Shown in pieces: positions 6,027 through 10,679 of a DNA stretch of 64,000 bases. Origin of the DNA: Oikopleura dioica. Lineage: Eukaryota; Animalia; Chordata. Made by a program: the position numbers and the translations under genes. The notes under the pieces are model-generated. The model did no database searches and had not been told where the DNA came from. It saw nothing but the letters and a program-made list of their open reading frames with translations. The DNA lies in NCBI GenBank assembly GCA_907165135.1, contig OU015568.1, forward strand, positions 10,292,001 through 10,356,000, in the 5' to 3' direction. Position 1 is the stretch's first letter. Each line of letters starts with the position of its first letter.

Positions 6027-7579
6027 TCAAGCTTCTTGGAGTTGCTGTTTTTCTTCATCCCATTTTTGCTTGAACCAGGCTGAGAACTCCTCGTAGTCGA
6101 CTTTTCGTTGATACTTCTCTTCGTAATTGTATATCGTTCCAATAAGTCGCTCAATCTGGTTGTAAAGGCCGTATTTGTTGTCTTGATATTTGGCGCAGTA
6201 TTCTGTCTTCCAGTAAAGAACTTTTTGGTAGATTTTGAGGGTGTTTTTGAGCTGTTCTTGATGGAAAGGTCGATTGAGTTCTCCGTGCAGTTGGTCTGCG
6301 AGGAACTTTGGCATCATGTCTGTTTTCGAATCTATTTTGAAACGTTTTGTGAGTGCAGCTATTTCGATATTTACCTCGGAGACAATTTTCGTGCTTCAAA
6401 TTTTTGAAAATATCCTCCCGTCTATTCGAATGATCCCGCCACAAGTTGTAAGCCCGTTGACGAATTTGACGCATTTCATTGGGGTTAGTACCAGAGGAGG
6501 TTTCGATTTTGACTTGTTTCAGGAGACCCCAGCTACTTCCACGAGCGTTGCCAGCAATTTTCTTGAGAAGGACTTTATCAGCTTCGATGAGTGGGATATC
6601 GGCGGTGGGGAGTGGTGGTGGAGGGTGAGGAGCGTCTTCGGTCGTCCATTCAACGGTAAAGCCTGTTTAGGTCAAAATTTGAACAAGCAAAATTTTAGTT
6701 TTATCGCATTTTGAGCCTTTCCTGTGTACTCTTCCTTCTGATCAGCGTCGAAAGCGATTGTCACCGAGTTCGTCTGCAGGTCAATCCAGTTGTCGAATCC
6801 ATTTTGCAGGCACTTTTTCTCAACATTTACAACCTTACCTTTTCGCTTCTTTTTCTCTGTCGGACATTGCCCTTTTCTGTAGAACTTAGTCAGTGTTGTC
6901 GAAGCGTCGTGAAATGATCTCCAGTGTCGCATCGGACCATTTCCCCGATTTTTGTCCTAACAAAGCATCGTAAGTCTCTACGGCATAAGAACTGTACTCA
7001 CTGGGTTTCGGCCGCCACAGAGTCGTCCCACTCTCATTGTCGGATTTTTCTTGACGAGTTGTGCCGTGAATCCCCCTGTTGGAATTCCACCTTTGAAAAT
7101 GTGAACGCGATCGAGACCACAGTGAGCGTCGTATTCTACGTCCAAGTAGGTAACTCTTAGTTTGAGCCATTTTCCTGGAGTTGCTGCGGTGATTTGCCAG
7201 ATGCAACTGTCTCGTCTCTGGTAGTTCGATCGATTGCCGTCCTTGTCAAGTAGAGGGTAGCTGAGAGATCCACTGTCCTTCATCAGAGGAACACCGTTTT
7301 TGTTGACACATCCTCGCTGCTCGAATTCAACCAAATCTTTTCCTTTTTGGCCACAAGTTCCATCCAAACATCTCGGGTACTCAAACAGCCATCTATAAAT
7401 GATGTTATAGAAGATTTCTTTCGCAAAAATTCAAATCAATTTTTATTAAACACTTTCCTTTCCGTCGGCATTCGCATAAAAGCATGATCGTGCTGCAAAC
7501 GATGTTCAATGTGTCGATTTCCTCTGTATTCACTCTGTGCATGCGAAAAACTCGATAATAACAAACTCAACAGCTTCAT
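6027..7579 (-). CDS. Secreted CUB-domain protein with a helical C-terminal region
   Basis: Signal-like MKLLSLLLSSFSHA; CUB motifs SGSLSYP..NY...CIWQI...LRVTYLDVEYDAHCGLDRVHI...GRLCG...VTIAFDAD...GFTVEW. Five exons join in frame; two of the four introns need GA donors (7393-7457, 6663-6721). Confidence 0.8.
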
Positions 7580-8208
7580 CGCGGTTGATTTTTATTTCAG
7601 TTACAAATCCTTAACTGTTCACAATTCTAGTGCATAATTCGTTTTTATACACATTGGTGGCGCTGTCGCGGGGCGCCGCGCAAGTATGGAAATGGCGCGC
7701 GACACACTTTCGTGAGCTTTCATGAAATTCTAAATATCTCGAATATCTAAAACTATTTGTTCATCCTTTCAATGTCAATATATTAGCAGTATATTAAAGT
7801 TATTAAAAGATTCACTAAAGCTTACATTTAAACTGATAGCAAGTTTCAAAACTACAAAACTATGCTGGTAGTCCACTTTCAAGAGGTTTTTTAGTATAGT
7901 AAAAATAGCGTTTTTTCTTTTTCACTTTCGCAGTAGAAATTCTTAGAATTTCCTGTAATTTGAATTCCGAGACACGTTTCTCTCCAACCAAGTTTGATAG
8001 AACCGATTTCAAAAGACCAATTATCCCTTTATTTTCTTTTCATCACCCATTCGACGTGCCGCGCCAAGTATCTGTCAAATGCAGCACTTTGGCAGGCACT
8101 TTTGATGTTTAAAAATCAGATTGAGTTGAATATCCGAAGATCACCGGAAGTAGTAGAGATCCGTTTATTTTTTCGCAGTTCAGTGCTTTAAAAATATTAT
8201 AAGTACAG

Positions 8209-9788
8209 CTAGCGAGTCGGATAAGGTTTGATCTGGCCATCTTTGGAGAAACCGTTTTTGTCGACCAGCAGATTTTGTGGAGAGTTCCAGAGCTTTTTCA
8301 GCAATTTAAAGCTTTCTTTTTTAAAAATGTTCATTGATGCATCGTCTTGCTGTGAAATTATAAAATACCTGGGTCGTATTCTTTGAGTTGTCCGCGAGTA
8401 AATGGCCAGTAATCATTGTAACCACGAAGAAACGCCACGCTCAAGGATGCCCACAGCTCTTATCGGCATCATCAATTGAGCAATTGCGCAAGAGCTATTT
8501 CCCAAAAGAAGGAAACTTGGAATTATGATTACCTCGTGGATCCTGCATTCCATACGTTTTTGGCACCAGGCCGGCAATGGCGGATGGAACGTTGAAGTAA
8601 ATTCCAGTCTTGTTGCATCGCGCGAAGTTGTCGAGAATTTCCTGTTATTGAAAATCAACGGAGTTAGCCTTTTGACCTAAATGCCCGTCTAGATTTAATA
8701 TATTCAATTTTCTAGCGTCCCTGATGTTCAAAGCCAAGAAGTGCATGCCACGCGTGTGATAACTCATGTACTAAATCATGTTCTCATCTTGAACTTACCC
8801 AATAACTTTTTACTCAAGAACCAAATTCAACTAAAATTTCCTGTCGTTGATGAACACCTTTTACAAAAAAAAAACTTTCGAAATTGCAATTTCATTAGAT
8901 GTTTAGACTTCTGATCCAGGTTTATTTTGATTAGGACTTATCCAAAATATTTCGCTCATTGAAAGTCACTTAGCGACTGAGCTAGTTTAAAATCATCGAG
9001 TCAACAGCTTCTGCGTTTCTCCAGGTGGAATATCAAATCTCGAGTGTAGCTTTTCGGTACTTACGCTTTCAAAAAGGATCAAGTAAGGAGCTTGACTACT
9101 TTAGAAAGTAGGGTTATATAAGTTTGATCCCAAACAACGCGTCCGTGTGGTTGAGAGTGCCGTTGACGAAATCGCGGTAGTTGTAGATCTCCACGATCAT
9201 ATCCGATACAAACTCACCACCTGTACATTAGCCGATTCTGCGAGCATTACTGTATTACCTGGTTGGTTTTCTCGAGGCCATTTTTTGAAGAGAAAGAAGA
9301 GATTTCTCATCTCAACATGCGTCCGATTAAAAATCTTTGAAGTTGCTTCGTCGTAGAAAAAGTCTTTCGACATGAAGATGTCCACATTCTTCCTCAACAC
9401 TTTTCTCGCTGCCTTTGGGAATTTCCTCGCTGCTTTGAATAAATCCTTTCGAAGTATATCGAACGGTTCCTGTCCGTGCTCCTCTCTTAGTCGGTCATCA
9501 ACAAACACCCGCTAAAAGTGAGGTAGTCTGCGTTTTTTACTTGTAAATTTAAAATATTTTCAAGAGCCCCGGAAGCTGAATCCAAAACATTTTAAGTTGG
9601 TGTCTAGTGATCAGTGAATCAAGTAAGTACCAACGGATGTTTCTACTCACCCATCCTGCTAGTTTGCTTTCTGTATAATTTACATCGTGATTCCCGTGTC
9701 TTTCGATTCCTGACCATTTATCCCACTCTGGATATCTCGAGCTTTCACCCAGATAAACCAAACAAGTCAAAAAGTAAAAGGTTTTCAT
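8209..9788 (-). CDS. Secreted zinc metallopeptidase (HEXXH) resembling a bacterial peptidase family; 7 exons, about 278 aa
   Basis: Exons 9788-9651, 9511-9259, 9220-9131, 8770-8721, 8641-8533, 8458-8369, 8315-8209 total 837 nt in frame: signal peptide ...GW|RVFVDDRL...WPREN...VEIYNYRDF...VHELSHAWHALLGFEHQEI...YGMQDPRELWA...NDYWPFTRGQLKEYDPESFKLLKKLW. Confidence 0.75.
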
Positions 9789-10008: not shown

Positions 10009-10679
10009 TCAGGCAGTTTTAGCTTTCTTTTCAGAATTGATTTCGAAGGAAAGATACAGATTCCAGCAATAGCTGGCGCACATGACCGCTGTGAGACGAT
10101 ATAAAATGGGCACGTAGGAGAAAATGACCAGTTGAGCGGGAATCCACCAACACCAAGCCTTTGGCATCAGCTCTGGCAAGTCTGCAACAACATTACTGAT
10201 CAACTCAGACATGGCTGGCAATTCAGCTTTTCCTGTCAAGTGCCTTGCGTCCGATTGAAGGGCTTTCCCGTACGCGGCGAGTGACACGATAGCGGTGAGT
10301 AAAAAGGGATAGAACACGAGTTGATCCGCAAACACAGCTGGCACTGGGCGCAGGCCGAAGCGGTTGAGCGTGAGCAACCAGCCCAAGTTTAACGGACCAG
10401 CGAAAAAGACGTAGATTGAAAAGAATCGAAATGTCCTTGAGGGGTCGAAACTTGGCTCTGAAAAGACATGTTATAGAAGACTTTTCATAGTGAGCTGACC
10501 AAGGACTTTTGGAAGGTTTCCGATAAGACATGAAAAATTGTTCAAATCGTCACCTCAATAAAAATAATCCTCGCTGTACCTGTGATTATTTGAACAGTTG
10601 CGTCACTTGTAGCTGCTATCCCAGCAGATATCATTATCTGTGTGGCTTTTGGCCACCTCGCAGCCAGTTGCCGAATCAT
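10009..10679 (-). CDS. Mpv17/PMP22 family membrane protein
   Basis: N-terminal ISAGIAATSDATVQ; ADQLVFYP and WIPAQLVIFSYVPILYR...WNLYLS motifs typical of Mpv17/PMP22. Confidence 0.85.

Follow-up and report, generated by a model that had tools for sequence, protein, structure and literature searches.

The window is a stretch of 64,000 nucleotides of Oikopleura dioica DNA that lies at 10.29 Mb of contig 1, in an assembly of 64,281,565 bases and 19 contigs. The Okinawan O. dioica assembly has been described as comprising 64.3 Mbp in 19 scaffolds, with a median intron length of 49 bp and with 11% of introns departing from GT/AG (PMC8008620). On the minus strand, from 9788 to 8209 (C1:10.30 Mb), the window carries a seven-exon gene that is single-copy in the 64.3-Mb genome and encodes a product of 277 or 278 amino acids. 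Its upstream neighbour is an Mpv17/PMP22 gene, and downstream lie a CUB-domain gene and an M1/ERAP1-like aminopeptidase gene, all three ordinary animal genes; the gene is physically integrated among host genes, and its six introns are of host type. Read piecewise in the window, all of its in-frame exon pieces translate without a stop.

Exon 1 (9651..9788; all exons are on the minus strand) begins with an ATG at 9788, comprises 46 codons and ends at a GT donor at 9650. It encodes a hydrophobic N-terminus which, judged by eye, is signal-peptide-like, followed by a conserved W-D-K-W-S-G..R.GN, and is conserved with exon 1 of three relatives (L002, L004 and L031). Exon 2 (9259..9511), itself found once in the genome, extends from RVFVDDRL to FKKWPRENQP and the first base of a Gly codon. 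Exon 3 (9134..9220) reads G-GEFVSDMIVEIYNYRDF...DAL and closes on the first base of a Leu codon; an alternative end at 9131, by way of a GG donor, would add one residue. The remainder of that Leu codon opens exon 4 (8721..8770), which continues with HELSHAWHALLGFEHQ, the zinc-binding HExxH helix, and is followed by a GG-AG intron. Exon 5 (8533..8641) runs from EILDNF to KTYGMQDPR, carries a conserved Tyr and ends on the first base of a Glu codon. Exon 6 (8369..8458) completes this codon, which specifies the Glu of R-E-LWA, and then reads SLSVAFLRGYNDYWPFTRGQLKEYDP, while exon 7 (8209..8315) reads E-SFKLLKKLWNS ... PTR up to a stop at 8211-8209. About 40 nt past the stop, a minus-strand AATAAA (8164..8169) resembles a polyadenylation signal and may act as one.

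Introns 1 (139 nt), 2 (38 nt), 5 (74 nt) and 6 (8368-8316, 53 nt) are GT-AG introns, and intron 4 (79 nt) is GG-AG. Intron 3 (8771..9133, 363 nt) is TT-AG at its RNA-supported position or, at 360 nt, GG-AG. Four codons are split by introns (Gly, Leu, Glu and Glu). The summed exon lengths come to 834 nt, or 277 amino acids; with a GG donor at 9130, as proposed when the gene was first noticed from the sequence without database searches (hereafter the sequence-only reading), they come to 837 nt and 278 amino acids. The hidden seven-exon gene of that reading is confirmed, with its motifs; its length is either 277 or 278 amino acids. Across the exon pieces we find W-D-K-W-S-G after the hydrophobic start, GW/RVFVDDRL (the stroke marking the exon boundary), WPREN, VEIYNYRDF, HELSHAWH, Y-G-M-Q-D-P-R-E-L-W-A, NDYWPFTRGQLKEYDP and SFKLLKKLW. 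The HELSHAWH and downstream Glu that had been proposed are both present in the translations; a Tyr stands seven residues ahead of this Glu, and NDYWPF follows further on. The start of exon 7 is placed at 8315 because homologues carry exactly one residue between 'HD[PRL]' and 'SF..LW'. Alternative starts at 8349 or 8345 were rejected, as they leave an intron of just 20-23 nt and add 12 residues that are seen in no homologue.

Three bulk oligo-dT RNA runs carrying the same species label were compared with the window. Their reads are just 90-95% identical to it and so stem from a sister lineage. In this lineage, four of the six junctions are bridged (E2/E3, E3/E4, E4/E5 and E5/E6). The joint between 8640 and 8720 is bridged by 12+2 reads and resolves to the GG-AG intron 4; that between 8770 and 9135, with one intervening letter, is bridged by 10+1 reads, and the mRNA reads Ala-Leu-Leu-His-Glu-Leu-Ser-His. 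Loose read ends at 8533 and 9222 fit the start of exon 6 and the end of exon 2, respectively. No reads fell on exons 1, 2 and 7 at the 90% cut-off in these sister-lineage runs; E1/E2 was placed from splice signals and alignment order, and E6/E7 from spacing in homologues. One contig from a metatranscriptome shares 99% identity with the window, is unspliced across the boundary of exon 2 and intron 1, and is uninformative, and a scan of JGI metagenomes for closer cDNA yielded genomic contigs only.

The junction between exons 3 and 4 needs to be interpreted cautiously. Its position after '..DAL' and the split Leu codon is agreed upon by the RNA joint, L002 and L031, and lies 3 nt upstream of the GG donor implied by the sequence-only reading. 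L002 shows a canonical GT donor at this junction. An intron placed there would start with TT in the window, as it would in four other lineage contigs, and the 'TTGGGATCAA' that follows is invariant across these contigs. In the lineage of the window, exon 3 may end at 9134, with TT opening the intron, or at 9131, where the donor would be GG. Of the two GG donors proposed among the six introns, that of intron 4 is thus confirmed by RNA, but that of intron 3 is doubtful and probably wrong.

To trace the gene beyond this genome, the window protein was searched exon by exon, while whole-protein tests were carried out on natural uninterrupted relatives (P0014, P0015 and L031). Exon 2, used as query in an exhaustive search of 1.84 billion representatives, gave only six true matches, each a short ORF called on a marine contig and extending into an intron; a further hit (P0004) was rejected as a false match, being a repeat protein whose units read 'FSKWPE'. 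Among the homologues, L002 is complete and has four exons. Catalytic-half fragments were found as well, among which P0014 and P0015 hold the whole core within a single exon, and window exons 4, 5 and 6 abut without gaps against cores of this type. L031 is cDNA-like, with a 5' end that resembles an adaptor tail and with intron 1 retained and the others spliced; its positions 285-986 (L031:285-986) encode a natural protein of 234 amino acids.

The intron-bearing orthologues sit on marine, eukaryote-like contigs. Intron positions vary between species, except that all contigs spanning the site ahead of HExxH have an intron there. Three Tara contigs show the gene adjoining a homologue of the CUB-domain gene that neighbours it in the window. 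Between lineages, pN is 0.07-0.15 against a pS of about 0.75, at which synonymous sites are saturated; over exons 3-5, the RNA-read lineage differs from the window by 18 nucleotide changes but only five amino acid changes, all conservative. By these sequence comparisons the exons, catalytic ones included, are under purifying selection between lineages.

These observations bear on whether the locus might be bacterial contamination, an assembly error or a set of ORF fragments lined up by chance, as could be suspected of a bacterial-type protein that has no annotated eukaryotic relative in our search results and that a simple ORF track missed. We regard this explanation as refuted: the six introns have splice signals and are matched by spliced reads, the gene lies 10.3 Mb into a chromosome-scale scaffold among the Mpv17, CUB and M1-aminopeptidase genes, other lineages have intron-bearing orthologues with the same neighbour gene, synonymous change is saturated while nonsynonymous change is low, and identity to bacterial proteins is only 26-37%. 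The earlier argument against contamination, made from introns and animal neighbours, is therefore strengthened by synteny in relatives, spliced RNA and purifying selection.

The bacterial relatives were reached through the core. When the core alignment was used as query against prokaryotes (one genome per species), two loci were returned. One is a full-length ORF of 253 aa from a Phycisphaerales MAG (L019:2572-3330); the other, from a Spirosomataceae genome, is a truncated copy next to a transposase. With the full-length bacterial protein as query, 80 relatives were retrieved, and with a mixed profile 216. These relatives are 230-290 aa long and are annotated as 'hypothetical protein' or 'Metallopeptidase'; among the matches listed, those with names belong to Phycisphaerales, Planctomycetes, Lentisphaera or 'bacterium', and all are bacterial. 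In genome samples, the family occurs in 67 of 301 Planctomycetota (about 50 of them with full-length copies) and in 7 of 301 Bacteroidota. Atlas neighbours were 100% bacterial, whether taken by sequence features for the larvacean protein or by shape (TM 0.78-0.83) for the model of a bacterial member, and some of them carry a fused DPP-IV/S9 or SASA domain. Searches of single exons and cores against Pfam, NCBIfam and PDB sequences gave nothing significant, and exon 2 alone retrieved no bacterial protein among the 1.84 billion representatives.

All seven window exons match the profile of this family (alignment A5) in order and over its full length: exon 1 at positions 19-38 (a match that is weak taken alone), exon 2 at 40-89, exon 3 at 122-134, exon 4 at 144-159, exon 5 at 160-194, exon 6 at 199-224 and exon 7 at 221-239. 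For the L031 protein, hhalign against the family gives a probability of 99.5% (E = 2e-23) over 179 columns. A paralogous family of planctomycetes matches the profile at positions 141-237 only. Like the PVC-type members (L019:2572-3330 and P0121 of Lentisphaera profundi), the larvacean protein is a single domain of similar length with an N-terminal hydrophobic leader, and shares the motif order VEI.N..DF, HE..HA.H, Y-x6-E-.-[FW]-A, ND..PF and ..LW. It differs from them in its six introns, in the low identity given above, and in having one extra residue before the ND motif and another C-terminal tail. The sequence-only reading had pointed, on motif order, to a zincin family typical of Planctomycetes/Verrucomicrobia-type bacteria; such a family exists, with the same motif order and full-length homology, and its distribution over Planctomycetota genomes and bacterial Atlas clusters matches the one proposed.

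The columns invariant in A5 are H145, E146, H149, Y192, E199, F201, A202, N212, D213 and P216. Their window equivalents are HELSH, Y..E, E-L-W-A and NDYWP, with Trp in place of F201. Acidic residues at +4 (nearly invariant) and +7 (invariant) from the ligand Glu in A5, both Glu in the bacterial proteins compared above, give way to Ser and Val in the window, as they do in every larvacean-type sequence.

We modelled the structure of one bacterial member (P0016; pLDDT 95.4, pTM 0.89). A Foldseek search with this model placed Pro-Pro endopeptidases (PPEPs) and lethal factor on top. Z-scores were 12.8 for the lethal factor catalytic domain (187 residues), 12.3 for PPEP-3, 11.7 for PPEP-2 and 8.7 for MtfA, compared with 6-7 for unrelated zincins. 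The larvacean 81-aa core folded alone reached a pLDDT of 44 and was set aside. Pfam matches are below threshold throughout. For ATLF (PF07737, cut-off 27.4 bits), two bacterial relatives score 13.6 and 20.5 bits, and no match was obtained for any window exon or for L031. For Peptidase_M90 (PF06167, cut-off 26.2), P0015 scores 11.8 bits and two bacterial relatives 13.1 and 17.0, and a search of this genome with PF06167 gave no match. M91 is likewise sub-threshold, and L031 against Pfam as a whole returned nothing. The distant likeness to MtfA and lethal factor proposed earlier is thus borne out by the fold of the bacterial model and by these sub-threshold matches.

Among small single-domain proteins, the PPEPs (PPEP-1/Zmp1, PPEP-2 and PPEP-3; MEROPS M34) are the best structural match, and for PPEP-2 and PPEP-3 the alignment with the bacterial model covers most of both chains. 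The PPEPs are secreted, as the larvacean protein probably is, and they too have HExxH, with a catalytic Tyr that precedes the ligand Glu by seven residues; they differ in showing no significant sequence similarity, and the ATLF threshold is not reached. The catalytic domain of anthrax lethal factor (M34), the top structural match of the bacterial member, has the same layout of His-Glu-His, Tyr and Glu by alignment. Lethal factor itself, however, is a toxin with four domains and about 800 aa, delivered by protective antigen, whereas the larvacean protein has none of its other domains and would be the bare catalytic fold. MtfA (Peptidase_M90; PDB 3dl1/3khi) shares the gluzincin sub-fold with the bacterial model, and its Y-A-x-x-D-P-x-E-x-F-A-x-L-S parallels the larvacean Y-G-M-Q-D-P-R-E-L-W-A-S-L-S; it likewise lacks an acid at +4 but, unlike a secreted protein, is a cytoplasmic regulator-type peptidase. 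By way of the bacterial relative that was modelled, the larvacean protein is most likely an M34-like gluzincin with a fold of the LF/PPEP type.

In every larvacean sequence seen, His-Glu-His is conserved, and so are the Tyr and the ligand Glu, at the exact seven-residue spacing. For PPEP-1 and PPEP-3, the PDB titles cite inactive mutants (E143A/Y178F and E153A/Y189F) in which the equivalent Glu and Tyr were changed. In the catalytic mechanism that we propose, the two His of HELSH would bind zinc together with the Glu of R-E-LWA, while the general base would be the Glu of HExxH, and stabilisation of the transition state would fall to the Tyr that precedes the ligand Glu by seven residues. Since the +4 and +7 acids of the bacterial proteins are Ser and Val in larvaceans, activity may be altered. 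This same loss of two ligand-helix acids in every larvacean sequence, together with a long stem in the tree that points to shifted constraints, could also be read as the mark of a horizontally acquired pseudo-enzyme or binding protein on a zincin scaffold. We consider that unlikely, given that the catalytic residues and their spacing are kept without exception, that MtfA also does without the +4 acid, and that purifying selection is strong in the catalytic exons as elsewhere. Most likely, the product is a secreted, zinc-dependent endopeptidase of the LF/PPEP type, which would act outside the cell.

We reconstructed an unrooted tree of 61 rows from natural sequences only, leaving out four wrongly extracted ORFs from GC-rich loci (L023, L024, L025 and L027) and the mixed fragment alignments A6 and A9, in which MAFFT had misplaced fragments. 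All larvacean-type sequences fall into a single clade (100/100) with a long stem, and this clade groups with a Phycisphaerales-named clade at 96/80; in an earlier quick tree it had no settled position. Because the tree is unrooted and the larvacean stem long, we base nesting within bacteria, and with it the direction of transfer, on distribution instead of topology. No non-larvacean eukaryote turned up in the exon 2 search of 1.84 billion representatives, among the matches listed in word searches with the larvacean core, or among Atlas neighbours. As far as these searches reached, eukaryotic occurrence is confined to larvacean-type contigs, in keeping with the earlier statement that no vertebrate or insect ortholog was known.

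Could the gene instead be an ancient eukaryotic or metazoan one, inherited vertically and lost in nearly all other eukaryotes, with the bacterial family as an old sister or as recipient? The unrooted tree allows a root on the long larvacean stem, fast protein evolution in larvaceans could hide relatives in other animals, and exon 2 alone retrieved no bacteria either. Against these points, no eukaryote outside larvaceans was listed in the searches with exon 2, core words and the Atlas, bacteria harbour the family widely and in diverse forms, and a great many independent losses would have to be assumed. We judge such a history to be very unlikely. Bacterial distribution, in-order homology and larvacean-only occurrence among eukaryotes together support the original suspicion of horizontal transfer, and we think it highly probable that the gene came to larvaceans by an old transfer from a bacterium and was then kept, to become an expressed single-copy gene of O. 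dioica; for direction and age, we infer rather than observe.

In the history we propose, an early larvacean would have acquired the gene horizontally before the divergence of the larvacean species sampled; the source family is common among Planctomycetota and other PVC-type bacteria. Spliceosomal introns would have been gained after transfer, an N-terminal signal peptide kept or re-made, and the gene then passed on vertically under purifying selection. More tentatively, and with less confidence than doubt, we suggest a capture of Planctomycetota type whose product is an active extracellular protease with a lineage-specific job, retained across larvacean species. Candidate jobs would be the processing or clearing of the proline-rich, glycosylated house matrix, or the digestion of filtered bacterial prey. 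Secretion into the gut or house had likewise been suggested by the sequence-only reading. The metalloproteases known from the house proteome (Oik24) are of ZnMc/astacin type and so belong to another family (PMC3390340).

If the protease is active in the house or gut, it bears on how larvaceans build, discard and feed through the house. The larvacean house matters for ocean carbon flux. Well-documented bacterial gene transfers into chordates are rare, and this gene, being intron-bearing, syntenic, spliced and under selection, looks like another. It also offers a first biological foothold for a large bacterial family that has no Pfam model or known function. We found no report of the gene or of its transfer in the searchable literature. 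The standard transfer from a bacterium to tunicates is that of cellulose synthase (CesA; PMC3390340), likewise a bacterial gene that became fixed and bears introns. CesA is tied to lineage-specific biology; it belongs to another protein family, and the protease gene is seen in larvacean-type sequences only. Should the reading as an extracellular protease be true, the gene would be a second functional bacterial contribution to larvacean life, after cellulose synthase.

Intron 3 contains two blocks that are conserved across lineages, at about 9085-9050 and 8990-8908. A snoRNA or other known RNA was considered for these blocks and rejected, as they have no Rfam match and no unusual RNA folding. 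An extra coding exon at about 9095-9062, with a strong GTAAGT end, was also rejected, both because its phase fails to connect to exon 4 and because RNA joins exon 3 straight to exon 4. The intron also holds a minor alternative joint, from 8908 to 8782, which may reflect a minor isoform.

In the seven-exon zincin gene (window 9788-8209, minus strand), intron 3 (9133-8771), which separates exon 3 from the HExxH-bearing exon 4, contains two conserved non-coding blocks, at window 9085-9050 and 8990-8908 (both minus). The two blocks are near-invariant among three or more O. dioica-type lineages; the remaining intron sequence has diverged. Block 9085-9050 holds a strong donor-like AAAGC|GTAAGTACC, and three RNA reads are spliced from 8908, the end of block 8990-8908, to 8782. 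Stops are present in every frame of the blocks, and a search of them for an Rfam match or a folding signal found neither. The blocks may represent an alternative exon, either regulated or unproductive, or else an element that controls splicing.

With exons 3 and 4 joined where the RNA reads support it, intron 3 would start with TT (TTGGGATCAA, window 9133-9124); these ten bases are identical across five lineage contigs. Either TT is a very unusual donor, or there has been a lineage-specific move to GG three bases downstream. In the spliced transcript of a related larvacean-type species (L031), the first intron is kept (L031:206-282), with AA..AG ends at the site demanded by the protein alignment. 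The protein encoded by this transcript terminates in K-D-D-E-L (L031:975-986), which resembles an ER-retention signal; this ending is missing from the window protein and from the four-exon homologue L002.

The zincin and CUB-domain genes adjoin one another head-to-head, in divergent orientation, in marine contigs from a related species (L005, L010 and L011), whereas in the window the CUB-domain gene (window 6030-7430) lies in tandem with the zincin gene; this difference therefore indicates a local inversion. On the other side, a Mpv17/PMP22-like gene (window 10009-10386) is encoded on the same minus strand, and the zincin start codon (9788, minus) lies approximately 220 nt downstream of its end. 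Operon-type co-transcription with trans-splicing is common in O. dioica, and is possible for these two genes.

Among the bacterial relatives, the Spirosomataceae family member is truncated to a 147-aa ORF that stops within the ND motif, and is directly preceded by a 365-aa transposase-like ORF (L020:1581-3225); this arrangement hints that the zincin family gene is mobile among bacteria. A second, more-distant family (for example, G058:C13:126149-126439) occurs among the sampled Planctomycetota genomes, often alongside the zincin family. Its matches, with E-values of about 1e-8 to 1e-10, are confined to positions 141-237 of the bacterial family profile, which make up the catalytic half, and it could act as an outgroup to root the zincin tree. 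In some bacterial relatives (Atlas clusters), the zincin domain is fused to DPP-IV/prolyl-peptidase S9 or SASA esterase domains, a hint of breakdown of proline-rich or glycosylated substrates.
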